Origin: Octopus sinensis
Taxonomy: Eukaryota
Length of the DNA stretch: 64,000 bases
Assembly: GCF_006345805.1 (NCBI RefSeq)
Contig: NW_021833026.1
Span: forward strand, 248,001 to 312,000
Direction: 5' to 3'
Shown here: one piece after another, positions 1-50,065 of the stretch
Position numbering within the stretch: position 1 is the first letter of the stretch
Layout of the letters: every line of letters begins with the position of its first letter
Translations under genes and position numbers: made by a program
Notes under the pieces: model-generated
The model's database searches: none
Seen by the model: the letters and a program-made list of their open reading frames with translations, nothing else
What the model was told of the DNA's origin: nothing

Positions 1-345
1 TGAGGTCCCTAAAACCTTAAAAAAAAATTAAAAAGATAATGAAGGTGATTCGACCTTTCCACGAGATCGGTCCTTAGGAACATTAAATCAATAAAGAGCT
101 TAAATAGGATATTCATGAGATAATGAAGGTGATTCGACCTCTTCACGAGATCGGTCCCTTAGGAACATTAAATCAATAAAGAGCTTAAATAGGATATTCA
201 TGAGATAATGAAGGTGATTCGACCTCTTCACGAGATCGGTCCCTTAGAAAATTATAATTTTTAAAAAGTCAAAAAAGATACTCATAATAATAATAATGTA
301 AATGATTCGACCTTTTCGTTAGATCGGTTCCCTTAAGAAATCAAA
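1..345 (+). repeat. 84-85 bp tandem repeat in Helitron 5' region
   Basis: GATAATGAAGGTGATTCGACC...GAGATCGGTCC recurs at 35, 119 and 204, with a degenerate copy near 295. Confidence 0.9.
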
Positions 346-1608
346 ATTTAAAAAAGGAAATTCGTGATTGATTTTTAATGTTTTAAATTAGGAAGTTATT
401 CACCGAACCTAATCTTTCCAAAATTAGAAAGTTTCACGTATAAATATCAATCTGAAATAAAATCCTACTTCCAGGCTAACTATTTTCATTGCTATCTGTG
501 CGCGCATGCAAAATTAAGTAATGGTAATTAGTTAACAATTGTGCAAATTTGAATTTTCAACATTACTCATTATAGATATCCACAAAAATAAATACCTCTC
601 CCCTTAACAGAACTTCAAACGATCAAAAATTTAACAATAACTAACGTTTTTGTCAATAAATTACTTTTTAACAATATTTCATTATTGAGGATGCTATCAG
701 AGGATTAACTCTATTTCCCTTGAGATATAGAAGATATTAGTTGTTAATTATAGATTGTTTCATTTGTAAGATGTTTAAATCAAAAGTGTTTGTAGAATCT
801 GCCAACAACATCGCAAGTCGAAACTACAGTCACCAAATTCACTTTGAAATTGTTAATTAATCTTAATAAATTAAATGGATATACGGTCGTATTTATGTGA
901 ATTCTCAATCATCTATATAATATATGAAATAAATAGATTATAATTTGAAGTAGATAGTTTCAATTAAGGTTTTTCCAGGTTTAGAATTAAAAACTTCCAA
1001 TTTTAGAAAATTTGATAAATATCTAAATTAAGATGTTTCCATTTTAGGAAATTTTATTTGTATTAATATAAAAAGATCCGTAAAAATAGTATAATATAGT
1101 TTGTTACATAGAAAATAAACATTTCAATAGCAATAGTATAATATAGATAAGAATGTCTGAATTGAGAAAGCACAATAAATTCAGAAATACAAAAACAAAA
1201 GACAAGAAATCGGAAGAAAGAGAGTTTGGGGGGAGAGGAATAATCAAAAAAAAATTGGTATCTAATAGTGAGGATTTGGAAATTATAAATGAGCATAAAA
1301 TAACTAATACTAGCTTACTAAATTTTGCAATATGCGCTAATAGTATGGAATTAGAAAGCTTGCACCAAAGCCATAAAAACAAATATCAAAAAATTTCTGA
1401 GAACAGGAATGAAAATAGTGATTTAACAAAAATTGATAAAGTAAATCACAACTTGACAAAGGTAATAAAAATTTTAATCTATTTTAATAGATATTTGAAC
1501 AAAGAAAAGAAATAAACAAAAGACAAATGCAGAAAAAAAAAAAAAGGAAAAAAACGAATCAACAAAACAAAAAATTATTCGAGAAAGAAAACAACAAACA
1601 AAGGAAGA

Positions 1609-1870
1609 CGATTGCAAGAAGTCAAGAAGGAAACAGAAGAAGAAAGAAAAATTAACAGAAAAGAAAACGACAGACAAAGGAGGACGATTGCAAGAAGTCA
1701 AGAAACAGAAGAAAGAAAAATTAACAGAAAAGAAAACGACAGACAAAGGAGGACGATTGCAAGAAGTCAAGAAACAGAAGAAAGAAAAATTAACAGAAAA
1801 GAAAACGACAGACAAAGGAGGACGATTGCAAGAAGTCAAGAAACAGAAGAAAGAAAAATTAACAGAAAAG
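1609..1870 (+). repeat. 69-bp coding tandem repeat (ETEERKINRKENDRQRRTIARSQ) in the RepHel N-terminus
   Basis: About 3.5 near-perfect 23-aa units in ORF 1612..2004. Confidence 0.85.
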
Positions 1871-4800
1871 AAACAAACAGAATAAGAAACGTTACAATGA
1901 GAAGCCAAAAAATCAAGAAGATCGTTATAAAGAATATCAAGAAATTATATCACGGAGGAATACGAAATTATATAATTCTAAATATTGGGAAATCTAGGAT
2001 TTAATTATAATGCAGTTAATGATTTTAAATATTTGGGGAATATCGGCACTATGTCCGATATATGTAAATTTTGTTCGGCCCTAAAATTTAAAGGGGAAAC
2101 AGCAGGCATGTGTTGCAATCTTGGTAAGGTAAATTTGCCTTCCTTATCGATTCCACCAAAACCACTATTGACGCTATTAAGAAATGAATCGCCGATCTCT
2201 AAGCATTTTCTTGAAAATATTCGAAAGTATAATAATTGTTTTCAGATGACATCGTTTGGAACAACAGGTAATTTTATTTATACGGGTTATATGCCCACAT
2301 ATAAGGTTCTTGGTCAAGTTTATCATAGGATGGGGTCACTACTCCCAAATGCAGGTGAGCAACATAGCTTTTTACAAATATATTTTTTGGAAAATTTTGA
2401 GGATCAGTCAACAAGAAGATTAGAAACAGAACCAAAATTACGTCAATCTATAATTAACATGTTACAAAACATGTTACAAGAACATAATTCATATATTTTA
2501 TCTTTTAGGACTGTTATGCGGACTACAAGAGAAAAGGACTATAAAGTAATTATTCATGCAGATAGGACACCTACGGGAGCACATGAAGGACGGTACAACA
2601 TACCAAGTTCTAATCAGGTTGGGGTTTTGATAGTAGGGCAACAATATGATAAACGAGATATTATCGTTAATCATAAAGACAGTGGACTACGAAGAATTTC
2701 AGAAACACATCGTTCATATGATGCTCTACAGTACCCTCTGATATTTTCAAGAGGGGCAGATGGATATAATTTTAAGGTTATGCAGCAAAATCCACTGACA
2801 GGACAAAATACAAATAAAAAAATTAGCTGTATGGCATTTTACTCCTATAGATTCATGCTAAGAAAAGAAGAATTTAATACTATTCATCGAACAGGACAAT
2901 TGTTTAATCAATATTTAGTTGACATGTATGCGAAGATTGAATCTGAGAGACTATTATACTTTCGTTTAAATCAACAAACAACGAAAACTTAGAGCAGAAG
3001 AATATATACATCTCAGAGATGCGATTATTAATGATGGTAATGTTTCTGATGTAGGTCAAATGATCATATTACCCTCATCATTTACAGGAGGACCAAGATA
3101 TATGCATGAACGAACACAAGATGCAATGACATACGTAAGAAATTACGGTACTCCAGATTTATTCATTACGATTACGTGTAATCCTAAATGGCCAGAAATT
3201 ATTGATAACTTATTCATAGGTCAAAAGTCCGAGAATAGACATGATATAATTGCAAGAGTTTTTAGACAGAAAATTATTAAACTGATGGACCTAATAACGA
3301 AGAGTCATATATATGGGAAGACACGATGCCATATATACAGTTGAATGGCAGAAAAGAGGACTTCCACATTCACACATTTTGATATGGTTAGTTAACAAAA
3401 TTAGGCCCACTGAAATAGACGACTGCATATCCGCTGAAATTCCAAATCCAGAAGAGGATCTGGAATTATATGAGACCATCAGGAAAAATATGATACATGG
3501 TCCATGTGGAATTCTTAATAGGTCTTCACCATGTATGAAGAACGGTAAGTGTAGTAAAGGGTATCCAAAAGAATTTCTTTTCAATACTCAAACAGGAGAA
3601 AATGGGTATCCTCTTTACCGTAGGAGAAGGCCAAATGATGGGGGACATACAGTGACTATCAACGAAGGCAAGGAAAATGAAATAACAGTGGATAACAGGT
3701 GGGTAGTGCCTTATAGTCCACTGTTATGTAAAATTTTTAATGCTCATATAAATGTAGAATTCTGCAACTCAATTAAATCAATTAAATATGTCTGCAAATA
3801 CATCAACAAGGGGTCAGATCAGGCAGTTTTTACTATTGAAGGACGGGATGAGGTGACTCAATACATGCATGGGAGATATTTGCAGCAGTGAGGCTGCGTG
3901 GAAAATATTTGGATTTCCCATACATGATAGATATCCTTTGGTAATGCATTTAGAGGTACATTTGGAAAATGGACAAAGAGTTTACTTCAATGAAGAAAAT
4001 GTACAAGACCAAATACAAAACCCAAGGAATTCTACACTAATGGCTTTTTTTGAACTTTGTACATTAGACACATTTGCAAAAACATTATTATATTGTGAAA
4101 TTCCAAGATACTACAGGTGGGAAACTACCGGTAAGAAATTCAAACGAAGGATAAGAGGAGAACCAGTGAATGGACATCCAGGAATTGTAAGTAGTGATGC
4201 ATTGGGCAGGGTGTACACAGTTCACCCTAATAATGCCGAATGTTATTGTGTTAGGTTACTTCTGCATAACATCCGAGGACCGACATTTTTTACCGATTTA
4301 AAGACAGTTGATGGAGTAATCTGCGCAACATTTAGAGAAGCCTGTTTTAAATTGGGACTTTTAGAGGATGATAAAAGCTGGGACGACGCATTGACCGAAG
4401 CTGGGATTTTCAATATGCCATCAAAGATTAGATATTTATTACATTGATGTTGGCATATTGTAATATATCAAATCCTCTACAACTGTGGGAGAAGCATAAA
4501 GAAATAATGTGTGAAGATATATTAAAGAGGGATGCAAAATCAGGTTTTGACGAGGACATTTTTAATGAAGGATTACTAATTATTAATAGATCACTCGAAT
4601 CAGTCATTGGGAAAAATATATGTGAGTACGGGTTTAGCGTTAACAGTCAAAATATTACAAATAATTTGGAATATGACAAATATAATTTAGAAGAACTACA
4701 AAAAATACTTAATGAAAGGGAACCGAATTTATTGGAAGGTCAATTAAGAATCTACAATGAAATAAACAGAAAGATTGAAGAAAATGATGGTAAAATATTC

Positions 4801-6086
4801 TTCATAGATGCACCGGGAGGTACAGGTAAAACATATCTATTAAATTTATTATTGGCAAAGGCGAGATGCAATAATAAAATAGCTATAGCAGTTGCTTCTA
4901 CAGGTATTGCGGCTACGCTTTTAGATGGTGGACGAACAGCACATTCAATGTTCAAACTACCATTAAATCTAGCAAAGGATATGGAGCCAGTTTGTAATAT
5001 TAAAGGAAATTCACTTATTGGGACTATTATACGTGATTGTAATCTAATAGTATGGGATGAGTGTACAATGGTAAGTAAAAGAGCATTTGAAGCAGTTGAC
5101 AGAACTTTTCGCGACATCAAACATTCAGATTCACCTTTTGGTGGATCGGTGTTAGTATTAGCAGGTGATTTTAGACAGACACTGCCTATTATTCAAAGAG
5201 GAACACCAGCAGATGAACTTAATGCATGTTTGAAATCATCGTATTTGTGGACCTTGGTAAAAAAAATAAGTCTAAATGTAAATATTCGTGCACAAAAGTC
5301 AGAAACAAATTCATTCGCTAAGGTACTTTTAAATGTAGGGAATGGAACACTCGAAACAAATTCAGAAGATTTTAAGGTATCACTACCTCCAGAGTTATGC
5401 ATAAATGTAAACAGACCAGAAGAATTATTAACCTCAGTTTATCCAAATCTAGAGGAAAATTACACATGCTTTGACTGGCTTAGGGAAAGAGCAATACTAG
5501 CACCACTAAATGACGAAGTACATAATATTAATTTAGATTTGCTCATTAAATTACCAGGAATGGAACGTATTTATAAATCTGTAGATGTAATTATGGATCA
5601 AGAAACAGCATGTGAATATCCTGTGGAATTTCTAAATTCTTTAGAACCGTCAGGGATGCCTCATCATACTTTAAAATTAAAGGTAGGAGCGCCAGTTGTT
5701 CTATTACGAAATCTAGAATCTCCAAGGTTATGTAATGGTACAAGATTAGTAATAACAAATTTAATGTCTAATATTATAGAAGCAACGATATTAACGGGGA
5801 AAAATAAAGGAGAAGATGTTTATATTCCAAAAATTCCAATAATTTCGGATGAATTACCATTTAGATTTAAGAGACTACAATTTCCATTGAAGTTGAGTTT
5901 CGCAATGACAATCAACAAATCACAGGGACAAACCCTTAAGTAGTAGGTTTATTTTTAGCAAGTGAATGTTTTTCACATGGACAATTGTATGTAGGTTGTT
6001 CTAGGGTAGGTGAACGAGAAAACCTATTCATATACACCAAAGATTGTCGTACAAGCAATATAGTGTATCAACAAGCATTACAATAA
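1612..6086 (+). CDS. Helitron Rep/PIF1-helicase, broken by about 5 small indels
   Basis: Rep motifs PDLFITITCNPKW, EWQKRGLPHSHILIW (HUH) and KYINKG; helicase [45 protein letters not shown]. Breaks near 2980, 3340, 3880, 4440 and 5940. Confidence 0.92.
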
Positions 6087-6490
6087 TAAGATCTATATAA
6101 TATTTGATAATTTTATACTATAACAATCAATTTTTATTATATAGACGAGTGCTTTTCACATGGCCAGCTGTATGTGGGATGCTCAAGGGTAGGTAGAAGA
6201 GAAAATTTATATTGCCAAGGATGGACGGACTGCAAACATCGTTTATCCACAGGCCTTAGAATAAGGTTATATCAAAGCAGGTCGCATTTATATATCTAAA
6301 TAAATTTATAGTTATTTAAGGAAACTGCGAGCGTAGCGAGCAGGGCCTCCGCAGGAGCTAGCTCGCAGTGAGCAAAGCGAACTGCTGAGCTAGTTTATAC
6401 ATAAATTTGTTTTAATTTCATTAGGTTCCAAAACAAATTTTATAGCTTTCCAAACGATAGCTAGAGTCTTATTAACATGGTCTCGTAGGG

Positions 6491-11362: not shown

Positions 11363-13632
11363 CTAGCTCGGCAGCTCGCTTCGCTCACCGCGACCTAGCT
11401 CCTGCGGAGGGCCTGTTTCATCAAACAACTATAAGTTTATGTAGATGTATAAAACTACCTGGTTTAATGTAACCCTATTCTATCGCCTGTTGATAAACGA
11501 TGTTTGTCGTCCGTCCTTCCTTGGCATATATGAATAAATTTTCTCTTCTGCCTACCTCGAGCATCCCACATACAGCTGTCCATGTGAAAAGCACTCACTC
11601 TCTAAAAATAACCCAACTACCTTTAATGACTGTCCCTGGGCCTTGTTTATTGTCATTGCAAACTTTTTTTTTCATTTTTTGTGGTCTATTTTTTTTATAT
11701 TTAATTTTTTCATTTTCCTTTGTAATTTCCTTTTTTTTCTTTTTTTATTTTTTTGTTTTTTACTGGCGGGAATGGGGCAGGGGGAGATGCGGCAGGCAGA
11801 AAGCGACACACAAAAAAGATTTAATTAATTACCTTATTAAGCTGACCGTTTTTTCTTCAGCTTCGTTTTTCCTCCTTCGGTTATCTATTTAAAAAATTAT
11901 TTTTGAATAATAAAAAAGTTTAGGAAAAGAGGCATACCGAAAATAAATTCTATCTTTACGAAAAACTCAAGTAAATAGTTAATATTTTTACGCAAATTCT
12001 TCTGATTGCGCTGTCAATTGGTGGTAAATTGTGTTAATGGTTGTGCTAATGTGGTTTCAACTATCAAAGTGTTTTTCAAAATCTGTTAATTGCACACTCT
12101 ATCAAGGTCGTGCGTCAATTGGTGGTAAATTGTGTTAATGATTGTGCTAATGTGGTTTCAACTATCAAAGTGGTTTTTCAAAATCTGTTAATTGCACACT
12201 CTATTCAAAGTCGTGCAATCTGTGATTGCACATTTGTCAAAGTCAAATATGATAATAGCTTTAATTTGATTCATGGTCGATAATGATATATGCATTTAAT
12301 TTTAAAGAGAAAAACATAGGATGAATTGAATTTCTTTATTGCGAATAATTGGGAGTTCATCATTGTTAATATTCTCGCTGTCGTTTTCATCAAGGATATT
12401 CTTAATACGTGAGATTTTTGCCTTGAAGGTTTTAATGGACCTCATCATGAATGTCGAGGACATTCGCGTTGTTCATTTAACCAAAATGCAGAAAATTTTT
12501 TTTTAATTTTTTTGGGGGGAAGGTTTTAAGGACTTCATCATGTAAGTCGAGGACATTGTAGTTGTTCATTTTAACCAAAATGCAGAAAATTTTTTTTAAT
12601 TTTTTTTGGGGGGAAGGTTTTAAGGACTTCATCATGTAAGTCGAGGACATTGTAGTTGTTCATTTTAACCAAAATGAAGAAAATTTTTTTTTAATTTTTT
12701 TGGGGGGGAAGGTTTTAAGGACTTCATCATGTAAGTCGAGGACATTGTAGTTGTTCATTTTAAACCCAAAATGCAGAATTTTTTTTTTTTTTTTTTTGGG
12801 GAAGGTTTTAAGGACTTCATCATGTAAGTCGAGGACATTGTAGTTGTTCATTTTAACCAAAATGAAGAAAATTTTTTTTTAATTTTTTTGGGGGGGAGGT
12901 TTTAAGGACTTCATCATGTAAGTCGAGGACATTGTAGTTGTTCATTTTAACCAAAATGCAGAAAATTTTTTTTTAATTTTTTTTTGGGGGGGAAGGTTTT
13001 AAGGACTTCATCATGTAAGTCGAGGACATTGTAGTTGTTCATTTTAACCAAAATGCAGAAAATTTTTTTTTAATTTTTTTTGGGGAGGAAGGTTTTAAGG
13101 ACTTCATCATGTAAGTCGAGGACATTGTAGTTGTTCATTTTAACCAAAATGCAGAAAATTTTTTTTTAATTTTTTTTGGGGGGAAGGTTTTAAGGACTTC
13201 ATCATGTAAGTCGAGGACATTGTAGTTGTTCATTTTAACCAAAATGCAGAAAATTTTTTTTTAATTTTTTTGGGGGGGAAGGTTTTAAGGACTTCATCAT
13301 GTAAGTCGAGGACATTGTAGTTGTTCATTTTAACCAAAATGCAAAATGCAGAAAATTTTTTTTTAATTTTTTTTGGGGGGGAAGGTTTTAAGGACTTCAT
13401 CATGTAAGTCGAGGACATTGTAGTTGTTCATTTTAACCAAAATGCAGAAAATTTTTTTTTTATTTTTTTGGGGGGAAGGTTTTAAGGACCTCATCATGTA
13501 AGTCGAGGACATCGTATTGCCAATTTGAAGTTGGTGTGCACACACAGACAGACAGACAGACAGACACACAGACAGACACACAGACAGACAGACAGACAGA
13601 CAGACACACACCATACCATTTTATTATTAAGA
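11363..13632 (-). mobile_element. Non-autonomous Helitron, family A copy 1
   Basis: A|TCTTAATAATAAAATGG...CTAG|T; (TGTC)n microsatellite; 12 array cores; helicase C-terminal remnant; removing it rejoins the integrase in frame (KNNN|DSYTW). Confidence 0.92.
12425..13515 (-). repeat. About 95-bp tandem array (12 cores) inside Helitron
   Basis: GTCGAGGAC core at 12453 through 13502, spacing 93-103 bp; variation is mostly homopolymer length. Confidence 0.95.
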
Positions 13633-13960
13633 TTATTATTCTTAAATCTATTAAATAACTTCATTAAATGATGCCTTTTAAGATCTATTAAGTCCATTTG
13701 AAATCTTCTGTGGGGTCTGTCTGCAATAACATGAAATTCAGAATCCGATTGTTTAAGGGGTGTGGAAAAGCGGCAAACGTCACAGTTCGAAACAACTTCA
13801 CGAATGATATCTCTTTTGATTATGAAAAATCGTTCTTGCATAGGTTCTCCAATGCGTTATGCCCACAATGATTGATTTTATGTAACTGTTCGGCAAGCAT
13901 TCTCATTTGTTTAGTATCGTCCAACGAAATCACTAATTTGTTAATGTTTCCATGATTTGC
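13633..13960 (-). pseudogene. N-terminal part of the same integrase (HHCC, first catalytic D region)
   Basis: LHKINHCGH...CDVC...RPHRRFQMDLIDL; probable 27-nt GC-AG intron at 13648-13674. Confidence 0.8.
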
Positions 13961-14096
13961 TTACAAAATTCTGAAATCCTTCTCAGATATAGTCTGCTAA
14001 CTACGATCTTCTGATTTCTGATTGCCAGGCCTCCTCCAAACGAATGGGAGTCAACCAATAGTCTCTTCTGCGATTGCTTGCACAAAATATAATCAA

Positions 14097-16472
14097 CTAG
14101 CTCGGCAGCTCGCTTCGCTCACCGCGACCTAGCTCCTGCGGAGGGCCTGTTTCATCAAAACACTATAAGTTTATGTAGATGTATAAAACTACCTGGTTTA
14201 ATGTAACCCTATTCTATCGCCTGTTGATAAACGATGTTTGTCGTCCGTCCTTCCTTGGCATATATGAATAAATTTTCTCTTCTGCCTACCCTCGAGCATC
14301 CCACATACAGCTGTCCATGTGAAAAGCACTCACTCTCTAAAAATAACCCAACTACCTTTATGACTGTCCGGGCCTTGTTTATTGTCATTGCAAAACTCAT
14401 CCTCAAAGGAAATTGCAGCCTTTTAAATCTAAATGGTAATTCATCAGAAATTATCGGAATTCGTGGAATATAAACATCCTCACCTCAATACTTACCTGTT
14501 AATATCGTCGCCTCTATTACGTTAGCCATCTTTCTTCAGCTTCATTTTTCCTCCTTCGGTTATCTATTTAAAAAATTATTTTTGAATAATAAAAAATATT
14601 AGGAAAAAAGAGGCATACAGAAAATAAATTCTATCTTTACGAAAAACTTCTTTTCTTAAGGTCAATAAAAAAATTTAGGAAAAGAGGCATACCGAAAATA
14701 AATTCTATCTTCACGAAAAACTTAACTAAATAGCTAATATTTTTACGCAAATTCTTCTGATTGCGCTGTCAATTGGTAAGTTAAATGTGTTAATGATTGT
14801 GCTAATGTGGTTTCAACTATCAAAGTGTTTTTCAAAATCAGTTAATTGCACACTCTATTCAAGGTCGTGCGTCAATTGGTGGTGGTAATTGTGTTAATGA
14901 TTGTGCTAATCTGGTTTCAACTATCAAAGTGGGTTTTCAAAATCTGTTAATTGCACACTCTATTCAAAGTCGTGCAATCTGTGATTGCACATTCTGTCAA
15001 AGTCAAATATGATAATAGCTTTAATTTTGATTCATGGTCGATAATGATATATGCATTTAATTTAAAGAGAAAAACATAGGATGAATTGAATTTCTTTATC
15101 GCGAATAATTGGGAGTTCATCATTGTTAATATTCTCGCTGTCGTTTTCATCAAGGATATTCTTAATACGTGAGATTTTTGCCTTGCAGGTTTTAATGGAC
15201 CTCATCATGAATGTCGAGGACATTCGCGTTGTTCATTTTAATCAAAATGCAGAAAATAATTTTTGATTTTTTGGGGGGGAAGGTTTTAAGGACTTCATCA
15301 TGTAAGTCGAGGACATTGTAGTTGTTCATTTTAACCAAAATGCAGAAAATTTTTTTTTAATTTTTTTTGGGGGGAAGGTTTTAAGGACTTCATCATGTAA
15401 GTTGAGGACATTGTAGTTGTTCATTTTAACAAAATGCAAACAGAAAATTTTTTTTTAATTTTTTTGGGGGGGAAGGTTTTAAGGACTTCATCATGTAAGT
15501 CGAGGACATTGTAGTTGTTCATTTTAACCAAAATGCAGAAATTTTTTTTTAATTTTTTTGGGGGGGAAGGTTTTAAGGACTTCATCATGTAAGTCGAGGA
15601 CATTGTAGTTGTTCATTTTAACCAAAATGCAGAAATTTTTTTTTAATTTTTTTTGGGGGGGAAGGTTTTAAGGACTTCATCATGTAAGTCGAGGACATTG
15701 TAGTTGTTCATTTTAACCAAAATGCAGAAAATTTTTTTTTAATTTTTTTGGGGGGAAGGTTTTAAGGACCTCATCATGTAAGTCGAGGACATTGTAGTTG
15801 TTCATTTTAACCAAAATGCAGAAAATTTTTTTTAATTATTTTTGGGGGGAAGGTTTTAAGGACTTCATCATGTAAGTCGAGGACATTGTAGTTGTTCATT
15901 TTAACCCAAATGGCAGAAAATTTTTTTTAATTTTTTTGGGGGGGAAGGTTTTAAGGACTTCATCATGTAAGTCGAGGACATTGTAGTTGTTCATTTTAAC
16001 CAAATGCAGAGAAATTTTTTTGTAATTTTTTTGGGGGGGAAGGTTTTAAGGACTCATCATGTAAGTCGAGGACATTGTAGTTGTTCATTTTAACCAAAAT
16101 GCAGAAATTTTTTTTTAATTATTTTTGGGGGGAAGGTTTTAAGGACTTCATCATGTAAGTCGAGGACATTGTAGTTGTTCATTTTAACCAAAATGCAGAA
16201 ATTTTTTTTTAATTTTTTTGGGGGGGAAGGTTTTAAGGACTTCATCATGTAAGTCGAGGACATTGAGTTGTTGTCATTTTAACCAAAATGCCAGAAAATT
16301 TTTTTTAATTTTTTTGGGGGGGAAGGTTTTAAGGACCTCATCATGTAAGTCGAGGACATCGTATTGCCAATTTGAAGTTGGTGTGCACACACACAGACAG
16401 ACAGACAGACAGACAGACACACAGACAGACAGACACACAGACGACACACACCATACCATTTTATTATTAAGA
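14097..16472 (-). mobile_element. Non-autonomous Helitron, family A copy 2
   Basis: A|TC...CTAG|T; microsatellite 16383-16450; 13 array cores; longer helicase C-terminal remnant (to ~14530). Confidence 0.92.
15185..16360 (-). repeat. About 95-bp tandem array (13 cores)
   Basis: Same unit as 12425-13515; cores at 15213 through 16349. Confidence 0.95.
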
Positions 16473-16818
16473 TTTGATTATATATTTTTAGTTCTTCTCC
16501 TTGTTTGTTTGTTCTGCAACCTACCCAGGTCGTGTCGGGCGACGTGCTGAAAAGCCGTGTTGCGCAGAAACAAATTGTAGGTATTACAAAAGTCGATCAT
16601 AAGATTTCCAGAGAAATTTCGATATCCCCTTACGTGATTATCAATGCAGCGTTCACCTTTAATTCACGACTTTGAGTTCCAGTCTCCCGCAATAAAAATT
16701 AGTACGGACGAACGGAGTTGGGAGTACACTTCCGATAAACTTTGTAGAAATCATCAGCTCATCCATACAAGCCAACAATCTTCCCATGTGAGGCGCATAC
16801 ACATTTATGCCAGTCATA

Positions 16819-18370
16819 CAGTACCGGTCATATGTTTTAGACATTCTGAAAAAATCCCAGTGTTTGATTTTTCTAAAGAAAATCTTATTAAAAAAATGCT
16901 TTTCATTAAGCATTATCCATTTTTTTTAGTTATTTATTTTTTCCCAATCTCATCGTCACTGTATTTCGACATCTTGATCTTTTTATAGATTTTGTCGAAA
17001 CTGGCCCAGTCATATGTTTTAGACATTTACGATGCACATCCATAATCTGGAATTTTTAAAAGTTAAAACGAGTTTTTATTAATTAAAACACAAGTTAGTA
17101 TTTAGTTACATCTCCTTTTTTCGATATTACATCATGTATTCTATTTGGGATCGACAAATACAAGTTTTGAATATAATCATCTCCCATCTTGTTCCATTCA
17201 TCTTTTGCCATCTCCCATAGTTGCTTAACGTTCTGAGGGTTTCTATTTCTGATTTTGCTCTTTAAATAATGCCAGCAATTTTCTATTATGTTAAGATCTG
17301 GCGATTGTGCAGGCCAATTGTTTAAAATATCACTCCTTTTTCAAGCAAATAATTTTTTGTAGACCGTGAAGTATGACATGATGCACCATCTTGTTGGAAA
17401 ATAAAGTTATCATCATATATCTCAGAAAGCCCTTGTTCCAAGATTCGTTGATATTCTACGGAATCTACATTTCCTTCGCACAATATCAAGGCACTTTTTC
17501 CATCGTGTCTGATACCGCCCCAAACCATGATTGAAGGTGCGAATTTCTGAGTTTTCGTTGTGTAGTTCGAATTGAATCTATTTCCAGGAGGTCTCCTTAC
17601 GAATTCTCGTGCTTTCGAAATTAATTCGATGCGGCACTCGTCAGTAAAATGACCTTATTCCAATCGAATGAAATGTTTCTAGTGCAGAATATTTTTCTCT
17701 TCTTGATATTATTAGTTGAAAGTCTAGGTTTTTTGGCTGCTATTCTTACGAAAAGTTCATTTTTGCGTAAGATTCTTCGTACAGTTTCGACACTGACGGT
17801 TTCCGTAATATTTAGGTCTTTTCTGATTTCATTCGCTGTTTTTTTGGGAAAACGTCGAGACTCACGTACAAGATTCCTTTGAGCACGTGCCGAAAGAATA
17901 CAATTTCTTCCAGATTTTGGTCTGTCGTAAAACCCATTTCCATCCAAATACCGTTGGTAAGTGTGATTTACGGCGCATCTGGATATTCCAAGTAAAATCG
18001 ATATTTCATGTACGGTATGACCATTTTCTCATCATAAAAACAATTCTATGACGCTGTTCAACAGAAAGTCGTGGCATACTGCTTTCAAATTAATTTAAAA
18101 CACGTTTCCGATACGAAAAATAGAAAAAAAGTATAAATTTTATTGAAATATAATGAATTTAAATAAATGTCTAAAACATATGACTGGGCCAATTTCGACA
18201 AAATCCTTAAACATATGAAGAAGTCGAAGATAAAGCGAAGATAAGATATGAAAATGATAAATATATAAATAATATAGATATACTTACTAAAAAACTTTTA
18301 TTTTATTGGTTTCTTTAGAAAAATAAAAACTGGGATTTTTTCAGAATGTCTAAAAATATGACCGGTACTG
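16819..18370 (-). mobile_element. Tc1-like DD34E transposon with IR-DR ends, frameshifted transposase
   Basis: TA TSDs; TIR CAGTACCGGTCATATGTTTTAGACATT; inner direct repeats near 17007 and 18165; motifs FTDE, MVWGGI, QQDGASCH, WPAQSPDLNIIE. Confidence 0.93.
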
Positions 18371-19127
18371 TAGTTGATTTCTTATTGCGATTCGATCTGT
18401 TACTCTCCATACTTTAAGTACCCGATCCACAAGTGAGACGTGTATAGCGAAGCCTATTCCATAGTGACGAAAGTCGGAAGGTAATAGTATTAACCGATAA
18501 TTGTCATAACATACATCTTGTTCCACAGAGAGAATTCTCGCATAATCATCCCTTCGTTTCTTGGAGCTATGCCACACTGGTTTTGTATCTTTCCAAATCC
18601 CTACATAGAATGTTCTGTTTGATGTTTAAGGCAATTTCTCTGACATTGAAAAATGTAATGGAAAAAAGCGTAGAATGGACAGATCGATAGTACGATAAAG
18701 ACATCAAAAACGACACCCTCTACAAATTATGTAAATGCAAGCCGATTAGCAATGAAGTTACTACCTCATGTGTTTCTTGATTCCATGAATAAATTTGCTA
18801 GAAAAAATTTGATTAATTTCCCTTTCGGAGTAATCATTATTTATGATTTCATTGGCAGAACCTCCAAACATCGATTTGAATAGAGGATTCAAGGTTGTCG
18901 AATGTTTATAAGAACTTGTAATTTCTTCCTTTCTCTTGCTGTATATGCTCTGACTGAGAACGACCATAATAACTTAATCTTTGCAAGATTCATAGACTAG
19001 ATTCTTTAAAAGAGAAATAAGTAATTTTTATTTCGTCGGTTTTTTAATTCGTAGCTTTAAATTCAATTATCAAATATTTCTGACAATAAAACCTAAACCT
19101 GATACAGTAAACCAAATCTAATTGTAG

Positions 19128-22100
19128 TCTTAATAATAAAATGGTATGGTGTGTGTCTGTCTGTCTGTCTGTGTGTCTGTCTGTCTGTTGTGACACCCAC
19201 ATTCAAATGTTACAAACCAGATCAAATTGTCAAAACCTTCCCTTTTGTAGTTATTCGATAATGAGGCACAATAAAAGGTTGATATCCTCTAAGAACCTTC
19301 CTGTCAAAAAATTTAATAAGAAAGAATATCCTCGATGATGAGGTCCCCAAAACCTTCAAGTCAATTTTCTGCGTTTTTGTTAAAATGAACAACAAGAAAG
19401 TCCTCGACTCACATGATGTGGTCCCCCAAAACCTCAAGCCAAAAAATTAAAAAAAATTATTTTCTGCGTTTTTGTTAAATGAACAACAAGAAAGTCCTCG
19501 ACTCACATGATGTGGTCCCCCAAAACCTTCAAGCCAAAAAATTAAAAAAAATTATTTTCTGCGTTTTTGTTAAAATGAACAACAAGAAAGTCCTCGACTC
19601 ACATGATGTGGTCCCTCAAAACCTTCAAGCCAAAAAATTAAAAAAATTATTTTCTGCGTTTTTGTTAAAATGAACAACAAGAAAGTCCTCGACTCACATG
19701 ATGTGGTCCCCCAAAACCTTCAAGCCAAAAAATTAAAAAAAATTATTTTCTGCGTTTTTGTTAAAATGAACAACAAGAAAGTCCTCGACTCACATGATGT
19801 GGTCCCCCAAAACCTTCAAGCCAAAAAATTAAAAAAAATTATTTTCTGCGTTTTTGTTAAAATGAACAACAAGAAAGTCCTCGACTCACATGATGTGGTC
19901 CCCCAAAACCTTCAAGCCAAAAAATTAAAAAAAATTATTTTCTGCGTTTTTGTAAAATGAACAACAAGAAAGTCCTCGACTCACATGATGTGGTCCCCAA
20001 AAAACCTTCAAGTGAACAACAAGAAAGTCCTCGACTCACATGATGTGGTCCCCCAAAACTTCAAGCCAAAAAAATTAAAAAAAATTATTTTCTGCGTTTT
20101 TGTTAAAATAAACAACAAGAAAGTCCTCGACTCACATGATGTGGTCCCCCAAAACCTTCAAGCCAAAAAATTAAAAAAAATTATTTTCTGCGTTTTTGTT
20201 AAAATGAACAACAAGAAAGTCCTCGACTCACATGATGTGGTCCCTCAAAACCTTCAAGCCAAAAAATTAAAAAAAATTATTTTCTGCGTTTTTGTTAAAA
20301 TGAACAACAAGAAAGTCCTCGACTCACATGATGTGGTCCCTCAAAACCTTCAAGCCCAAAAATTAAAAAAAATTATTTTCTGCGTTTTTGTTAAATGAAC
20401 AACAAGAAAGTCCTCGACTCACATGATGTGGTCCCCCAAAACCTTCAAGCCAAAAATTAAAAAAAAATATTTTCTGCGTTTTTGTTAAAATGAACGACAA
20501 GAAAGTCCTCGACTCACATGATGAGGTCCTCCACAACCTTCAAGCCTCGTGAGGCCATTAATTAGCTTAGCTATCTTTTTTCGATGACATAAATTCTTTT
20601 TTGTTAATTTTCGTTAAAAAAATAAAATAAAAGCTCTAATTGTTATCGACCATGAATAGACTGTGCAATTATCAGATTTTGAAAACCACTAAAAAGGAAA
20701 AAGCAAAAATTATTAGAGATTTACATAATTGATTCTTTTTAACTGCCGAAACTGACAAATTCGATTATGCTACTGTTTAGATTTCTTAAAAGATAGAGGC
20801 AAATAAAATTTAAATTAGTCATGTAAATTTCAATTTGCCTATATTTAAATCTCCTTGATTTAACAGGCTTTAATTTTTTTCCTTATAATACTACAAAGAT
20901 GAAGCTGATTATCATTTTCTTTACCGAAACAGACAAGTTCGATTATGCTAAAGTTTCAATTCCTTTAAACATAGAGGCAATTAGTATAATGGCTTTGATT
21001 GGATAATACACTTTACATAAATTTCACTAAATAAATTTACGTAGAAAATTTAATATAAATACTGATTCGCGTTTACAAAATCATAAGAATGTCCTATAAA
21101 GAGAGATCTGAGAATGTTAACAAACAAGAGAATATGAACCATATAACAAAAAAAGAGAAACGAGGGAAGATGTGCTTAAATGGTGAGGGAACTTAGACAA
21201 CAGCTGAACAAGGTCAGGACTGCTGTTAGACTCAACTAGGGTAATAGAATTATGCATTCTAGGTTAATGGTTTGGGATGAATGTACGATGGCTCATAAAG
21301 GCGCATTCAAGCAGTTGACCGAACATATAGAGATATCAAGAATTGTAGCGACCATTTGTTTGGGGGAGCATTAGTTGTATTGGCAGGTGATTTTAGACAG
21401 ACGCTGCCAATTATTCAAAGAGGACGCCTGCGGATGAATTGAATGCCTGCCTCAAATCGTCATATTTTGGACACACGTGAAAAAGGTAAGCTTAGATGTA
21501 AATGTACATGCACATTTACAAGGCGTTAATAGCATATTCCCACAAATCCTTCTAGATATTGGAAATGGGGCAATCACTTCAGAATGCACGACCAGAAAAT
21601 TAGGCTACCGGAAGAATTATGTATTTTCGTAGAAACAGCAGAAGAATTATTGAATGCCGTCTATTCCGAACTATCTGAACACTACGTGAATTTCGACTGG
21701 CTGCGTGAACGAGCTATATTAGCTCCACTTAATGATGAGGTACTTAATATAAATTTAGATTTATTAATGAAAATCCCTGGCAGAGAAAGAATATATAAAT
21801 CGGTCGACGTTATTATGGACCATGAAAGGGCCTGCGATAGATTTAAGAGACTACAATTTCCGCTGAAGATAAGTTTTGCTATGACAATAAACAAGGCCCA
21901 GGGACAGTCTTTAAAGGTAGTAGGCTTATTTTTAGAGAACGAGTGCTTTTCACATGGCCAGCTGTATGTGGGGTGCTCAAGGGTAGGTAGAAGAGAAATT
22001 TATTTATATTTGCCAAAGATGGACGGACTGCAAACATCGTTTATCCACAGGCCTTAGAATAAGGTTATATCAAAGCAGGTCGCAGTTATATATTACATAA

Positions 22101-22190
22101 ATTTATAGTTATTTAAGGAAACTGCGAGCGTTAGCGAGCAGGGCCTCCGCAGGAGCTAGCTCGCAGTGAGCGAAGCGAATGCTGAGCTAG
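19128..22190 (+). mobile_element. Non-autonomous Helitron, family B
   Basis: TCTTAATAATAAAATGGTATGG 5' end identical to family A; microsatellite; 96-bp array; helicase remnants 21260-22057; hairpin plus CTAG|T. Confidence 0.92.
19325..20545 (+). repeat. 96-bp tandem array (13 full cores plus 1 degenerate)
   Basis: GTCCTCGACTCACATGATGTGGTCC core; one unit shortened to 55 bp at 19972-20027. Confidence 0.95.
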
Positions 22191-28032: not shown

Positions 28033-29362
28033 ATGGGGATAGCTGATAAAAAAGAGAATGTGGCGGACCTCTTTGACTATGAAGGGCGAATGATTGGCCG
28101 TGGGACTTACGGAAACGTCTATAAGGCCAGATGCAAGTACACAACCATTGACAACCCACAGAAAGACTAAAATCGACTATGCCCTCAAACAAATCGACGG
28201 GAATTGTCTGTCCATATCGGCCTGTAGAGAAATCTCTGTAAACTGTTGTGTCGATCCCCCAGTTGCTGAGAGAAATCGACCACAGAAACGTCGTCAAGTT
28301 GCGGAAAGTGTTTCTGTCGAATATGGACAGGAAAATATACCTCCTGATGGACTATTCTGAGTACGACCTCTGGGTTGTGTCCCCTCGTCCATTCTCAGCA
28401 CATCATCGGGTACCACCGCTCCAGGAAGGTCAACAAGAGAGCTCTCCCCCTTCATTTAACCATGCTCAAGTCCATGATGGCACAAATGTTGAAGGGAATC
28501 AAATATTTACACGAAAACTGGATAATGCACAGAGATTTAGTTGTATTTGCTTTGCATTTCAGAAACCTGCAAATATTTTGGTGATGGGGGAAGGACCTGA
28601 GAAGGGCACTGTCAAAATCGCTGACTTTGGTTTTGCCAGGCTCTTTGACTCTCCTATGAAGCCTTTGGCGGATGTGGACCCCGTGGTGGTGACCTATTGG
28701 TACCGAGCCCCCGAATTGTTGTTGGGAGCCCGACACTACACCAAGGCAATAGGTTGGTTGTCCTGTCCGATCAAGACATTTGGGCCATCGGCTGCATATT
28801 TGCTGAGTTGCTTACGTTTGATCCACTCTTCTTCTGCCAACAGGAGAATATCAAATCCAGCAATCCCTACCAGTTTGAACAGCTTAATAAAATATTTCTC
28901 TTGATGGGATATCCTGAGGGTATTCGGCAGTGGTCATTTTCAGAAAGAGACTGGCCTTTGGTTGTAAACATGCCTGAGTACCCCACTCTTCTCCGAGACT
29001 TCAAACGGTCTAGATTTGGGGGGTTTTCCCTTAATTCATATTTCAAGTCGTTTGAACATGTGTATTTAAGCAATCGGATGTTCAATTTGGTAGGAATGGA
29101 GTGAAGTATTAGATTGTGTCTATGCTCAAGATGGACCCCCTTCAGAGGGTGTCAGCTGAGGAGGCACTGACTGACCAGTGGTTTATGGAAGACCCTCGTC
29201 CGCTACAGAAGTATAGGGGTGTTATATTCCAGCATATTCGAGATGGTCGATGTGACATATCCAAAAAGAGACTATCTCGAAAGTGCTAGGAATACGGAGA
29301 AAGTGCAGGAAAGTGCTGCCAAGAGAGTGGCCAACCAGGTTGGACAGCTACGATATTTGTAG
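28033..29362 (+). CDS. CDK8: Cyclin-dependent kinase 8/19
   Basis: [73 protein letters not shown]; 23-25 nt introns. Confidence 0.95.
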
Positions 29363-31020: not shown

Positions 31021-34000
31021 TTATAAATCCATAAAATTGATTTCGCTTCTAATTCCGCTCGATTCCGTTACCAGTTTGACCAACTCAAAATAAGAATAAA
31101 TGAAGGCCCGGCTAATCTCCAAGGAATACTTTCCACAAATGTTGAGATCCCTCATATTTGCCATCAGCAGACATCGGGCCATTCTGATCTGCTCCTGTTG
31201 CTTTCTCTCATTTTCCAATCGCTCGTTTTCTTCTCTCTCAATCCTCGACAACTCTTCGGCTGCCAGTCTAAGACTGAATCAATGAAGGAGACCTCTCTTC
31301 CTCCTCCTGTTTTCGGCGTCTTATTTCCTCCTGTTCCTTCTCGAACATGTACCGCAAGTACTCAGATTTCTCCATGCTCTCCAACATTAGCCTTTCTTTT
31401 TCTAGTCTGACATTTTCCTCAATGATTCGAATTCTTTCAAGTTCTAAAACTTTTCAAATCAAGTTCTAGAACCCATTTTTCGCCGTTCTTCTTCCTCTTG
31501 TTGCTCCCTAATCCTATTCATGCGCTCGTTATAGGCATTCCTCTCTCTCTCGAGGAGTTCCTTCGCCTTCCTCTTCTGTCTCTCACTGGCCAATTCGAGT
31601 TCACGCTGCCTTCTCTCTTCTCGCTCTTTTTCCTCTCGTTCCCTCCTATAGAGAGATATCCCACAAAGGAGTACGCAATTTCCTCTTCTTTGAGGCGAAG
31701 TTGCTCGTTCAGTTCGCTTTGAAGCACTTTTTCCATTTCATTTTCGAGTTGCTGCTTTTTTAGCATCTCCAAACGTTGTTCCTGTTTGGCAATGGATTGG
31801 TCTTGCCTCTTTTTCAAAGCCAATTCTCTTTTTTTGGCGTTGATCTCCTTGTTAATCGACTGTCTCCTGAACTCCTGTGGAATTTGCGTTTTGGAAAATA
31901 CCTCTTCCTTTAAAATTTCTAGTTCTGATTTTTGGCGAAGTTTGTTGTAGAAAAGTTTAGTTTCTGGCTGAATGTAAGTCGATTCGACTTGGTACTCGTT
32001 GTCGGAAGTTTCCTCACTCTAAAGGTGCTAAAAACCATCCTGACCTCAATTCGAATGATGGACATTTCAGTTTCGTCCCTGACAAACGATTTGACTGTCA
32101 AGACACTTTCTGTTGTGGGCTGCACAATCTCGGATTTCTGTTCAGTACAAATCGATTGTTCGCGCGATTTAGATTTACTGGTCGCGGATTGGGTCTTGGC
32201 TATTTGTGGTGGTCCCGATTCCTGAGAACTGTATTTCGTACTGTTTTTGTTTTTTTCGGATAATTTATTTGTAGAAACTGACTTGCTTTCAGTCAACTCC
32301 TCCTTTTCGCTGTGCTTCTCTGAACCGGGCTTTTCCCCCTCGACCATGCTTTCTCTCCCTAAGTGAATTCGGCCTCGAATACAAAGGGGTGGTTAGATGC
32401 AGTTTAGGATAATTTTAACCTTTGGTTTTGACGACTTTTATGGCCTTCTTTACGATTTCCTTCGCCATTTTTTTACTTTTTTGAATTTTTCTTGAACCAT
32501 CTTCTCTGCTTTCGACTTGTTCTTTCCGAACCGACTTGGGTTGAGCTGGTTTCTCTACAACACTTTTTACGCTCGATTTATCTTTCCCGCCTTCCTTGGC
32601 TTTTTTCTCTGTCAAGTTTAGATTGAATGTTCAATACTTGCGGGTGTGGAAAATATACTTTTAGGACTTTCTAACGAGTTAATGCTCTTTTGGTCCTTGC
32701 AAGGCTCCAAAACGTTGGTTTCTCCCTCCGAGATGACTGTGTGGGTGTCTTTAAGATGATCTATATGGGACGGGTCTTTAGAACTCTCTTTAGGTTCTTG
32801 GGGAGTTGTTGTCGATTGATGTGTAGATATAACCAGGGGACTGGGGGACTGTTCACTGCTTTCCAGTCTGATTATTTTGGTTGATTTTGAGTGTTCGGAG
32901 GGGGCAAGAGGCTCGCTTGTCTGATTTACACTTTCCTTTATAGAAGATTGGTCTTTTACGGGCTCAGTTGCGGATTCCATCAAAGTTTTTAAACTTTCGG
33001 ATGACGACTTGGGTATAGATTTTGCATTTTCTAAAACTGTGCGATTACTCGATGTGTGGGAGTCCGGAATAATTTTATCACTCGTTTTCTGTGAAATTAG
33101 GACGACAGACTCAAACAGTCGAGTCAGTCTTTTTTGAAATGATTTCACAAAATTCTTCCAAATCTCGAGTCAATGTTTTTGCTTCGGACGATCCTATCAT
33201 TTCAGAACTCTACAGAATAGCTGTTAATTTACTTACAATTGATTTAACTGTTTCTATCATGTCTTGAACCAATGTTTTTGCTTCTGACGACTCCATAAGT
33301 TCGGGACTCTACAGAATAGCTGTTAATTTACTTACAATTGATTTAACTGTTTCTATCATGTCTTGAACCAATGTTTTTGCTTCTGACGACTCCACAAGTT
33401 CGGGACTCTACAAAATGGCCGTTAGTTTACTTACTATTGATTTGACTGTTTTTATCATGTCTTGTATTTCACTCACAATGTCTCCTGTTTGTACCCAAAC
33501 TATACAATACCGGAGCTCTCCCCAGAAATTCCCTTCGATAAAACACTTTTTATTTCCTCCAAAAGAGATTCGGAGATCGGAGACTGCCCTTTTGAAGTTT
33601 GGTCTTTTGATTTGCTTTCCTATACGACTATGTTGGCATTCCTACATTTTGGGGGGTCAAAGATTTCGAGGCTGTCTCTTCTGACTGTTCGAGGTGTTCT
33701 GATGCAAAATCATCGGTAGAAGTCTTGTTTTGAGTAGATATCACATTTGGAGCTGATTCTACAATTGTTATATAAAAACCGAATACCGTGCTGACTAGAA
33801 GTGGCTATGTCCACGAGGGATTTGCTCTTCACCACATCCGACTGACTTGATGTGAATAAAGTGGGCTTTGATGAACTTGTTCGTTGTTTTTTGGAGGATT
33901 TTGCTGAAATTAATTTGTAGTTATGAACAAGATTTAGACGACACAATTTGATCAATAATGCTGTTCCTGATCTGACTCATCGTTTTGGTGATTTCCTGCC

Positions 34001-35265: not shown

Positions 35266-36273
35266 CTAGATCCTTTCAATTGACGATAAAAGCGCAATTT
35301 GAGTTGCCATGCGCCGAGTGTATCTTACTTAGAACCACAATTTCGATTTCCACGTTACACCTAACCGGGTCGATTTATTGAGTTTCATTGTTTAATAATC
35401 ATTCAAGATATATAACTACGTGCTCGTATTTATTTGCAGTATTTGGCTATGAGTACTCTTCAGTTGACATGTTATACTACAAACACACTTTTGGAAGGTT
35501 TTTCCAAAAAAATTAGTTTTAAAAACACTTACCAACATAATGGCTTAATTAGTGTTTTCAAAAGTAGATGTGCTGATCCAATACTGGTCTTATTAATTAG
35601 AAAGATTGATTGTCAACTTTCACTTTAGAAAGTAGAGTGGGCTACTTCTGAATTCAAGTCCTTATATATATTGTTCTCACATACACTTTTACTGACGATC
35701 TTTGGAAATTTAAAAACTAAAATTTTCCTTTCTATAAAACAAAAATGACAATTTATTTCAGAATAGATCATCATTGAAATTCACATCTTCCAGTAGTAAA
35801 ACATTACCAAACAAATTATTTTAATGATATACAGGTTAGTCATTCTTTGACTTTTTTATTCCAACTTGAACTGTAACTGATTAGATATAATAGGCTAGTG
35901 ATTAATAGTTAATTAAGGTTGGTTACCTCTGTATCTGGGAATTGCGGAAAAGGCTGTATTTAGATATCCATTTCTTGATTCAAAATTTATGTTGATTAAA
36001 TAGTCCGGCCAGAATTTGCTGATTGAATGATTGTTAGAATAAAAAGACATTTTTATTTATATAACTTACAACTCGCAAGTAGCAAAGAATGGGTTTTGGA
36101 AATTTTGAAAATACCGAACAAGGTAGATCAAAGAATTCTGTAGATCACGATGACGTGATTACCACAATATTAATCAGAATTGATAGATTATAATGTGAAT
36201 AAATTTAAATTTAACCACAAATAGGTGAGCTCTACTCACTCAGAAACAATGATGATAATATTAATTAATCAAA

Positions 36274-50040: not shown

Positions 50041-50065
50041 CATTTCATTATCAATTTATTATTCT

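Follow-up and report, generated by a model that had tools for sequence, protein, structure and literature searches.

On a contig labelled Octopus sinensis, three tandem arrays of a ~95-bp unit, each unit with a short inverted repeat (dyad) at its core, raise the question of which kind of element carries them and whether the symmetry of the core was kept by anything other than chance. The window analysed, 64 kb in length (VCDQ01001555.1:248001-312000), belongs to an 892-kb contig of the assembly GCA_006345805.1. An earlier note made from the letters of this stretch had read the arrays as parts of Helitrons, compared their layout with that of DINE-1-type elements and considered the dyads as covarying and perhaps selected. 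Sequence reading combined with a motif search revealed that the flagged span contains three internally deleted Helitron copies of one family (H2, H3 and H4), with the arrays lying inside these discrete elements; the arrays are the 5' subterminal tandem-repeat regions of three copies of the HLE1 type. The second part of the question receives a less firm answer, as a bias towards symmetric cores appears only slightly more likely to be real than not.

Three Helitron copies with 5' arrays

H2 (11363..13632, minus strand, 2270 bp) is a non-autonomous Helitron of family A, which begins with 5'-TC at 13632, ends with CTAG at 11363-11366 and is flanked by A and T. H3 (14097..16472, minus strand, 2376 bp) is a second family-A copy whose flanks differ from those of H2, indicating an independent insertion, and H4 (19128..22190, plus strand, 3063 bp) is a non-autonomous Helitron of family B. 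The three copies start with TCTTAATAATAAAATGGTATGG followed by (TGTC)n and finish with ...GAGCTAG in front of a flanking T; their 5' ~65 nt agree at 63/65 positions. What they retain is, on one side, the 5' terminus with the microsatellite and the array and, on the other, the 3' hairpin/CTAG terminus together with the final ~250 nt of the helicase gene. The 3' terminus of H2 is accordingly accompanied by a remnant of the helicase C-terminus, and in H4 the corresponding remnant was read at 21200..22057 (open reading frame, ORF, 21584-22057), the 3' hairpin at 22121-22167 and the CTAG terminus at 22187-22190 (all plus strand).

The microsatellite of H2 (13540..13610, minus strand) sits between the array and the 5' terminus (13611-13632), and its counterparts were located by Tandem Repeats Finder (TRF) at 16386..16451 in H3 (minus strand) and at 19150..19188 in H4 (plus strand). 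The identical 5' end and the (TGTC)n ahead of each array, both remarked upon in the earlier note, are thus borne out. TRF delimited the arrays to 12425-13516 (94-95 bp x 11.4, score ~1870), 15187-16363 (94 bp x 12.4) and 19364-20546 (96 bp), each of them adjoining an (ACAG)n/(TGTC)n microsatellite. Scanned with a profile of the unit, the arrays gave counts of 12 in H2, 13 in H3 and 13 plus one truncated in H4, which matches the copy numbers of 12, 13 and 14 given before; solo units outside the arrays were found neither in the rest of the window nor in L001, a further family-bearing sequence described below. As annotated, array A of H2 extends over 12409..13516 (minus strand, 12 cores with a period of 94-95 bp), that of H3 over 15169..16363 (minus strand, 13 cores) and array B of H4 over 19323..20548 (plus strand, 13 units and one truncated, period 95-96 bp), with spacers of the type A6-9 TT A5-9. 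The interior core reads GACTTACATGATGAAGTC in family A (on the minus strand) and GACTCACATGATGTGGTC in family B, whereas ATGAGGTC is found in both edge units of the H2 array and in the last unit of H4. The interior cores differ at three positions and each pairs over 8 bp with one bulge, exactly as had been described.

Ends, insertion site and coding partner

All five copies of the family considered here (H1–H5) begin with TC (TCTTAATAAT... or TCTATATAAT...) and end with CTAG. H1 occupies the beginning of the window, and H5, the fifth copy, lies on another contig (L001 5676-11982, VCDQ01013506.1), is 6.3 kb long and is 99% identical to H1. The 3' hairpin with the stem CTGCGAGC...GCTCGCAG folds with -17 to -18 kcal/mol over the last 75 nt of H1, H4 and H5, while a shorter hairpin is present in H2 and H3. 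The insertion site could be deduced from an empty-site paralogue of H5 located 2 kb away (L001 3522-3721), which reads ...GATTAA|TTAATTG... across the junction and is 92% identical there to the joined H5 flanks (L001 5526-5675 + 11983-12132), the flanking sequence itself being a repeat. This paralogue indicates an exact insertion between A and T without target duplication. The flanking base is a 3' T in 5/5 copies and a 5' A in 3/4. A comparison of the ends detected no terminal inverted repeats in the elements, and a search for subterminal inverted repeats (subTIRs) by local alignment of the first 60 nt with the reverse complement of the last 200 nt yielded low-complexity matches only.

H1 (1..6393, plus strand) is a Rep/Hel-coding Helitron copy in which several ORFs stand in place of one continuous reading frame. 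The 5' end of H1 falls outside the window, ~1.8 kb upstream (L011 ~3760), and the window starts inside its 5' array, of which only the end is included (1..340, plus strand): positions 1-33 are the tail of a B-like unit, type-X units of 85 bp occupy 34-254, and the last X unit (~290-340) is degenerate; the full parent array corresponds to L011 3934-5900. The Rep (HUH) ORFs at 1985-2992 and 3313-3891 match the Pfam domains Helitron_like_N and REP_ORF2-G2P, and the helicase ORF at 4444-5943, which matches PIF1 and Pif1_2B, shares 100% identity with XP_029657713.1 (all plus strand). A 3' subterminal hairpin at 6324-6369 (plus strand; DNA fold -18 kcal/mol) precedes the CTAG terminus at 6390-6393. 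Judged by these domains, H1 is the partner copy with Rep (HUH) and a PIF1-type helicase, albeit with a broken frame. An endonuclease (APE) found no Pfam match in H1, and only ~300 bp separate the end of the helicase coding region (~6090) from the 3' terminus.

In view of their TC/CTAG termini, the hairpin at the 3' end, the A|T insertion site and the Rep + PIF1 copy within the same window, the elements are canonical Helitrons (HLE1), as the earlier note had held for Helitrons in general; the defining features of this group have been summarised (PMC11417382) and were demonstrated experimentally for Helraiser (PMC4778049). Membership among the Helentron/HINE elements (HLE2) was considered and rejected on the basis of the missing subTIRs, the A|T instead of T|T target and the missing endonuclease. 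As a separate observation, the last ~25 nt of H2, H3 and H4 (11363-11390 and 14097-14124, minus strand; 22167-22190) contain GCGAAGC, which we take to be the sequence of a very stable DNA mini-hairpin, and H1 and H5 have GCAAAGC instead.

Composition and origin of the arrays

The units had been described as homogenised within elements. They are indeed homogeneous, but per lineage and not per element: those of H2 and H3 are mostly identical to one shared consensus and do not cluster by element, and the edge units of both arrays correspond one to one as orthologues. The missing clustering and the matching edge units imply that the arrays were assembled in master copies and moved in their entirety by transposition.

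Longer copies of the family, Rep/Hel-bearing as well as Rep-less, contain larger and mixed arrays (L011 3934-5900, L012 2136-5850 and L001 5849-6800) with a higher-order repeat of ~420 bp, in which X variants are followed by a perfect-palindrome unit and then by a B-like unit. The three complete parental arrays measure ~1.0, 2.0 and 3.7 kb, an approximately threefold range, and the largest comprises ~43 units. Among 97 parent-array units, 66 belong to type X (85 bp, core GACCTCTTCACGAGATCGGTC and variants), 17 to type P, whose core is the perfect palindrome GACCTCAT-G-ATGAGGTC, and 14 are B-like (GACTCACATGATGAGGTC). The P and B-like cores occur in the parents as isolated pairs ~96 bp apart, one each per ~420-bp block. 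An interior unit of array B in H4 deviates from the parental B-like unit by one substitution plus homopolymer indels, and by sequence comparison the 95-bp unit is derived from a short B-type segment of the mixed (X, P, B) parent array. In L012 (region 1-5850), the CTAG end of the first copy is directly followed by a second copy that is truncated at its 5' end.

The 3' 265 nt of H4 are 97% identical to those of H1/H5, and the 3' 330 nt of family A are 87.5% identical to H4; as far as the sequences tell, family A is the older lineage. Copy identities of 97-99% mark the family as recently active. H4 itself has mixed ends. Its 5' end is like that of the older family-A copies (19128-19192 against 13568-13632, 63/65 nt identical) and differs from the 5' end of the Rep/Hel copies (TCTATATAATAAAAC...), to which, however, its 3' end is 97% identical. 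The combination suggests either recombination between lineages or a second, unseen autonomous partner. A metagenome scan with AAAATGAACAACNNNNNNGTCCTCGAC for further array families returned one chance match in GC-rich bacterial coding DNA and no tandem repeat.

Symmetry of the array core

The edge units of the A and B arrays all have the right arm ATGAGGTC, and so do all parental P and B-like units, one interior unit of H3 and the truncated first unit of H4. Its occurrence in edge and parental units identifies this arm as ancestral. The A-type and B-type left arms pair poorly with it. In the interior A units a G to A change (G15A) leads to ATGAAGTC, in the interior B units an A to T change (A14T) leads to ATGTGGTC, and each produces 8 bp with one bulge. 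An enumeration of single core substitutions indicated that, from each ancestor, only 2/54 yield 8 bp, with G15A and A14T both among them. Moreover, A14T is the sole substitution in the 96-bp B unit, and hence one of 2/288 possible ones, and G15A is one of two substitutions in the 61 comparable nt of the A unit. Random triple mutants of either core keep 8 bp in 1.5% of cases. At its variable positions the half-site has CT (P), TT (A) or CA (B), and the symmetry stays; if it was selected, this behaviour argues for structure rather than sequence-specific recognition of the duplex. The arrays always adjoin the 5' terminus, which in Helraiser is essential for transposition, and the N-terminal domain of the Helraiser protein binds single-stranded DNA (ssDNA) (PMC4778049).

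On this basis the following scenario is proposed. The core of the unit would descend from a 17-bp palindrome-type site, GACCTCAT-G-ATGAGGTC. In the master copies of the two lineages unequal exchange or replication slippage might have multiplied one unit into 12-14 copies, and the whole array would then have been copied by transposition. In both lineages the amplified unit had presumably just regained an 8-bp dyad, which would point to a non-random process favouring symmetry. The dyad might either form a hairpin, small and imperfect and of the kind HUH enzymes recognise, when rolling-circle transposition exposes the single strand, or make the unit more prone to amplification, as a palindrome promoting its own multiplication. 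With a slight preference we assume that the dyad matters as DNA structure and not as a fixed sequence, be it as ssDNA hairpin or as amplification-prone unit. Templated mutation without function is a nearly equal rival to this assumption.

Several observations weigh against a selected dyad. The symmetry argument is based on just two independent events and on a dyad rule (8 bp, one bulge, loop <=5) which was defined after the data had been seen. An equally good dyad is found somewhere in the unit in 13-19% of dinucleotide shuffles; the dyad of a single unit is therefore unremarkable, and only its retention through sequence change is notable. Within the arrays 3/378 cells of the core are variant, compared with 7/756 in the adjacent 36 columns and 91/987 in the homopolymer spacer, and between the families the core differs at 3/18 positions versus 18/83 elsewhere (Fisher p = 0.76). 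The conservation of the core above the spacer, which had been proposed as a check, consequently fails as soon as the non-homopolymer flanks are taken for comparison. The predicted ssDNA hairpins are weak at 37 C (A -2.0, B -3.1 and P -5.9 kcal/mol), and whole units folded as ssDNA perform no better than shuffled ones (z -0.5 to +0.7). In 14 parent units the B-like core has stayed imperfect, and type X (66/97 parent units) offers only 3-4 contiguous pairs, its variants losing pairs instead of compensating for the loss. The bulge moves between A and B and with it the pairing register, so that one cannot speak of covariation in the sense of fixed pairs. Hairpins can also arise and be maintained in the absence of selection when replication switches template at a quasi-palindrome, a known mechanism that can give the same changes (PMC8794818). 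Outside the arrays, the half-site ATGAGGTC has four scattered matches elsewhere in the elements, none of them near a terminus.

The covarying dyad of the earlier note is accordingly supported in part, namely as a real pattern with thin support and a credible non-adaptive explanation. Its retained symmetry is non-random on a small sample (2/54 per lineage and 1.5% of triple mutants), but the shift in register between A and B speaks against covariation proper. The search for compensatory change in more families, suggested as a check, gave a divided outcome, with two symmetry-restoring changes in A and B on one side and the non-compensatory type X on the other.

Alternative explanations

The strongest competitor, which we regard as quite possible although somewhat below even chances, is a neutral satellite-like array that arose as a by-product of slippage or unequal exchange and has no function in cis. 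Template switching would copy one arm from the other, and the changes would be visible since the mutated unit happened to be the amplified one. Core conservation not exceeding that of the flanks, weak hairpins, unstructured units and the absence of the dyad from the X units, the majority of the parent arrays, conform to this explanation, as does the roughly threefold size variation among the three complete parental arrays. Tandem arrays are common in Helitron-type elements and have been treated as satellite-like (PMC7492417). Both changes also agree, by reasoning, with short stretches copied from the opposite arm (GACTT giving AAGTC and CACAT giving ATGTG), in line with the known maintenance of hairpins by template switching (PMC8794818). 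However, a full templated correction should abolish the bulge, which both families retain, and the 14 parental B-like cores went uncorrected. A neutral process also leaves unexplained why both successful non-autonomous lineages amplified the dyad unit and not the commoner X.

Alternatively, the dyads might recruit the transposase in the manner of iterons, by binding the element's own protein via its STPR repeats or a zinc-finger-like region; more sites near the 5' terminus would then improve the competition for Rep/Hel and account for the expansion in non-autonomous copies. Such copies keep little beyond the termini and an array with 12-14 B/A units, where the parents hold isolated core pairs. 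The protein of the family possesses an N-terminal domain of STPR-type DNA-binding repeats, a feature specific to HLE1 according to HELIANO (PMC11417382), and the N-terminal domain of Helraiser is needed for DNA binding and cleavage (PMC4778049). The ~95-bp period, near 9 helical turns, would moreover place the sites on one face of the helix. We nevertheless consider this proposal unlikely, because one protein would have to serve all half-sites although these differ between P, A and B (CT, TT, CA), and no clustering of half-sites is seen elsewhere in the element or near the 3' end.

Somewhat less probable again is a role of the arrays as promoter or enhancer modules, in which they would provide binding sites for a dimeric host transcription factor driving Rep/Hel, comparable to the mouse L1 monomers, and would be carried passively in the deletion derivatives. 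Their location between the 5' terminus and the first ORF, their constant orientation and the other repeats that related Helitrons (Physella, L005) hold at the equivalent place would fit such a role. Yet the non-autonomous copies are geneless and still hold uninterrupted runs of 12-14 B/A units, which never occur in the parent arrays, and ~800 bp lie between the array and the first ATG in H1. In our assessment recruitment by the own protein and promoter activity both draw on the position of the arrays and on nothing else. The more far-reaching suggestion that the dyad arrays are cis-acting enhancers of Helitron mobilisation, acting as hairpins or dimer sites for the N-terminal domain of Rep/Hel and feeding the circular DNA and repeat elimination of dicyemids, is regarded as improbable. 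Pure coincidence, in which the founding unit had the dyad by accident and neutral change of the ordinary kind accounts for the three core differences, agrees with the shuffle rate of 13-19%, the mere two lineages and a core change of 3/18 equal to the neutral expectation, but it is the most improbable of these explanations given the ~0.015 probability that three random core changes keep 8 bp, the joint chance of (2/54)^2 ~0.0014 if one random core substitution was fixed per lineage, the family-B change being one of 2/288 possible in the unit, and the recurrence of the perfect palindrome at the homologous site in 17 parent units.

Host and circular DNA

The host of the elements was examined by means of two genes outside of them. 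The CDK8 gene (28048..29211, plus strand), used as host marker, contains six GT-AG introns of 23-25 nt (28137-28161, 28374-28398, 28540-28562, 28753-28775, 28920-28943 and 29090-29112). Their removal restores a frame that aligns with homologues, and the orthologue, which is not annotated as a protein in the public collection, is apparently intact. The idea of a frameshifted processed pseudogene was rejected, as each change of frame falls on a GT-AG segment of 23-25 nt, without which the reading continues in frame. A protein search with the CDK8 kinase gave no species-level match. Likewise, a gene related to zinc-type alcohol/sorbitol dehydrogenases (ADH-like; ~36270-37340, minus strand; Pfam ADH_N and ADH_zinc_N) is interrupted by several GT-AG mini-introns of ~19-36 nt, and their removal restores an open frame aligning with homologues. 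Introns of such sizes are characteristic of dicyemids, with a median of 27 bp in Dicyema sp. and a mean of 38 bp in D. japonicum, which was collected from the renal sacs of O. sinensis and whose genome has 36.7% GC and 49% repeats (PMC6543705, PMC6736024). Composition fails to discriminate between an octopus and a dicyemid host.

As both genes have ultra-short GT-AG introns of 23-31 nt, a dicyemid is the most likely host, and the contig probably owes its Octopus sinensis label to contamination. The guess of the earlier note, put conditionally, that the host is a dicyemid thus gains support, and the octopus as host, suggested by the 100% match to XP_029657713.1, was rejected on the same grounds. 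The Helitron family is present on at least three contigs of GCA_006345805.1, namely VCDQ01001555.1, VCDQ01000373.1 (L012) and VCDQ01013506.1 (L001); the two contigs besides that of the window measure 431 kb and 66 kb, and the intron test applies to the 892-kb contig alone. The RefSeq records XP_029657713.1 and XP_029657420.1/XP_029657421.1, which bear the label of an octopus pif1-like helicase, come from these two contigs and probably represent transposon proteins of the parasite. A likely parasite contamination of a public octopus assembly is thereby exposed, which is relevant for data curation. Helitrons are not mentioned in the genome papers on Dicyema sp. and D. japonicum (PMC6543705, PMC6736024).

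Helitron transposition yields circles with joined ends (PMC4778049, PMC5876387), and extrachromosomal circles are abundant in dicyemids, where a part of them may in fact be collapsed direct repeats (PMC6543705). A link between the Helitrons and the circular DNA or repeat elimination of dicyemids is hypothetical. If it were true, this young family of rolling-circle transposons would be a candidate source of some of the circles for which, together with chromatin elimination, the animal is known.

Other features of the window

Between H3 and H4 lies a Tc1-like element (16817-18372) with terminal inverted repeats of ~210 bp, each with two copies of a CAGT..GGTCATATGTTTTAGACATT motif (IR/DR), and a degenerate transposase frame on the minus strand; an initial reading as nested mariner elements was dropped in favour of this single element with long IR/DR-type terminal repeats. 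A 137-aa ORF through array B (19985-20398) was rejected as coding, since it exists only by virtue of the 96-bp unit length (32 codons). A 567-aa ORF at 41022-42725 found no homologues by protein search. Further repeats comprise two direct repeats 5.8 kb apart (45685-46202 and 51500-52012), a 99-bp x 3 tandem repeat (33171-33464) and several inverted repeat pairs of 190-550 nt that span ~48.5-62 kb (48500-62300). ORFs with zf-BED/Spin-doc and DUF4371 domains at 47190-48319 (minus strand) are hAT-like. An Rfam scan of the whole 64-kb window gave no match.

Comparison with known systems

Among characterised Helitrons, the elements are most directly comparable to Helibat/Helraiser (HLE1), with which they share the TC/CTAG ends, the 3' hairpin, A|T insertion without duplication, Rep(HUH)+PIF1 and deletion derivatives that keep the termini (PMC4778049, PMC11417382). 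Unlike in Helibat/Helraiser, a (TGTC)n microsatellite and a tandem array of 1-4 kb lie directly inside the 5' terminus, the protein has STPR-type repeats at its N-terminus, and the host is most likely a dicyemid. The distance from the 3' hairpin to the terminus is 23 nt as compared to 11 nt in Helraiser.

The layout, in turn, is of a kind already known. In Cg_HINE of the oyster, which are Helentron derivatives, a left flank is followed by a short tetranucleotide microsatellite, often GTCY/GTCK, a variable spacer and an array of satellite-like monomers (PMC7492417). HINE, DINE-1 and Cg_HINE agree with the present elements in the order of the modules including a right flank with a 3' palindrome, and GTCY/GTCK is the same repeat as TGTC (PMC7492417), so that the likeness to DINE-1-type elements seen by the earlier note holds for the layout. 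The resemblance to DINE-1/HINE ends there: HINE/DINE-1 belong to HLE2, with subterminal inverted repeats and T|T insertion, whereas in the present case no subTIRs were found and the insertion is A|T, the monomers measure 95 bp versus ~160-170 bp in HINE/DINE-1/Cg_HINE, and an endonuclease domain is missing. An architecture of microsatellite plus array, documented so far mainly for Helentron derivatives, is thus found in a canonical Helitron. In this small, clean family the direction of array evolution can be followed from unit to unit, which makes it suitable for addressing the question of functional versus junk Helitron 5' arrays.

At the protein level, relatives with ~50% helicase identity were found in Physella, Pycnogonum and two unidentified eukaryotes. 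Their 5' start is alike, with TC, A/T-rich bases of the TATATA type and then a microsatellite of the TGTC/TGTG/TATG type (L005 6540-6605, L006 5715-5780, L007 7075-7120 and L009 6000-6045). Shared as it is with relatives in other phyla, the microsatellite beside the 5' terminus looks like an old, conserved feature of the clade and not like a local accident. Between their 5' end and the ORF, several relatives have repeats of another kind, tandem or palindromic, as exemplified by a 47 bp x 8.7 repeat in a Physella copy, ending 170 bp ahead of the ORF, a 164 bp x 2.1 repeat in a second Physella copy, and two ~100-bp repeats in L005 with the perfect palindrome ATTGCGCAAT in each.

Also shared are the STPR-type repeats of 69 bp (23 codons). 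In H1, they were detected by TRF at 1584..1921 (plus strand) and give the N-terminus of the Helitron protein its STPR-like repeats of 23 residues; in the clade, they recur at L002 7486-8051, L004 7971-8191, L005 7187-7811, L006 8005-8432, L007 7953-8217 and L009 7029-7328. STPRs have been described as an HLE1-specific extra (captured) domain by HELIANO (PMC11417382). An alignment puts the 69-bp repeats of H1 in register with the STPRs of a related Helitron protein, and Pfam STPRs match in the relatives L004 and L005. From these alignments, the N-terminal part of Rep/Hel is a tandem array of repeats of the STPR DNA-binding type, conserved from the presumed dicyemid to snails and a sea spider.

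With respect to the dyad, three groups of systems offer themselves for comparison. In IS200/IS605 elements, the HUH transposases recognise subterminal imperfect palindromes as ssDNA hairpins with an extrahelical base. In both systems, an element of the HUH-enzyme type has small, imperfect hairpins close to an end, with a bulged base in the stem; IS200/IS605, however, have one hairpin per end with proven binding, whereas 12-14 weak predicted hairpins are found here, all at one end and with a bulge whose position differs between the families. The subterminal transposase-binding repeats of En/Spm (CACTA) and Ac/Ds and the iterons of replicons are closely spaced motifs of 6-22 bp with conserved sequence. 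As in the present arrays, many short motif copies, some of them dyads, are clustered within a transposon end or beside an origin. In contrast, the motif sequence drifts here and the spacing is 95 bp; a conserved repeat sequence of the iteron type is not observed, as the half-site differs among P, A and B and the core is conserved no better than its flanks. Finally, satellite DNAs with A-tracts and short dyads, as well as the tandem 5' monomers of mouse L1, are composed of homogenised monomers with divergent edge units and higher-order repeats. The A-tract spacers, the homogenised monomers and, in the case of L1, the location upstream of the ORF of the element are shared with the arrays described here, which differ in being short (1-4 kb), confined to a DNA transposon and moved within it.

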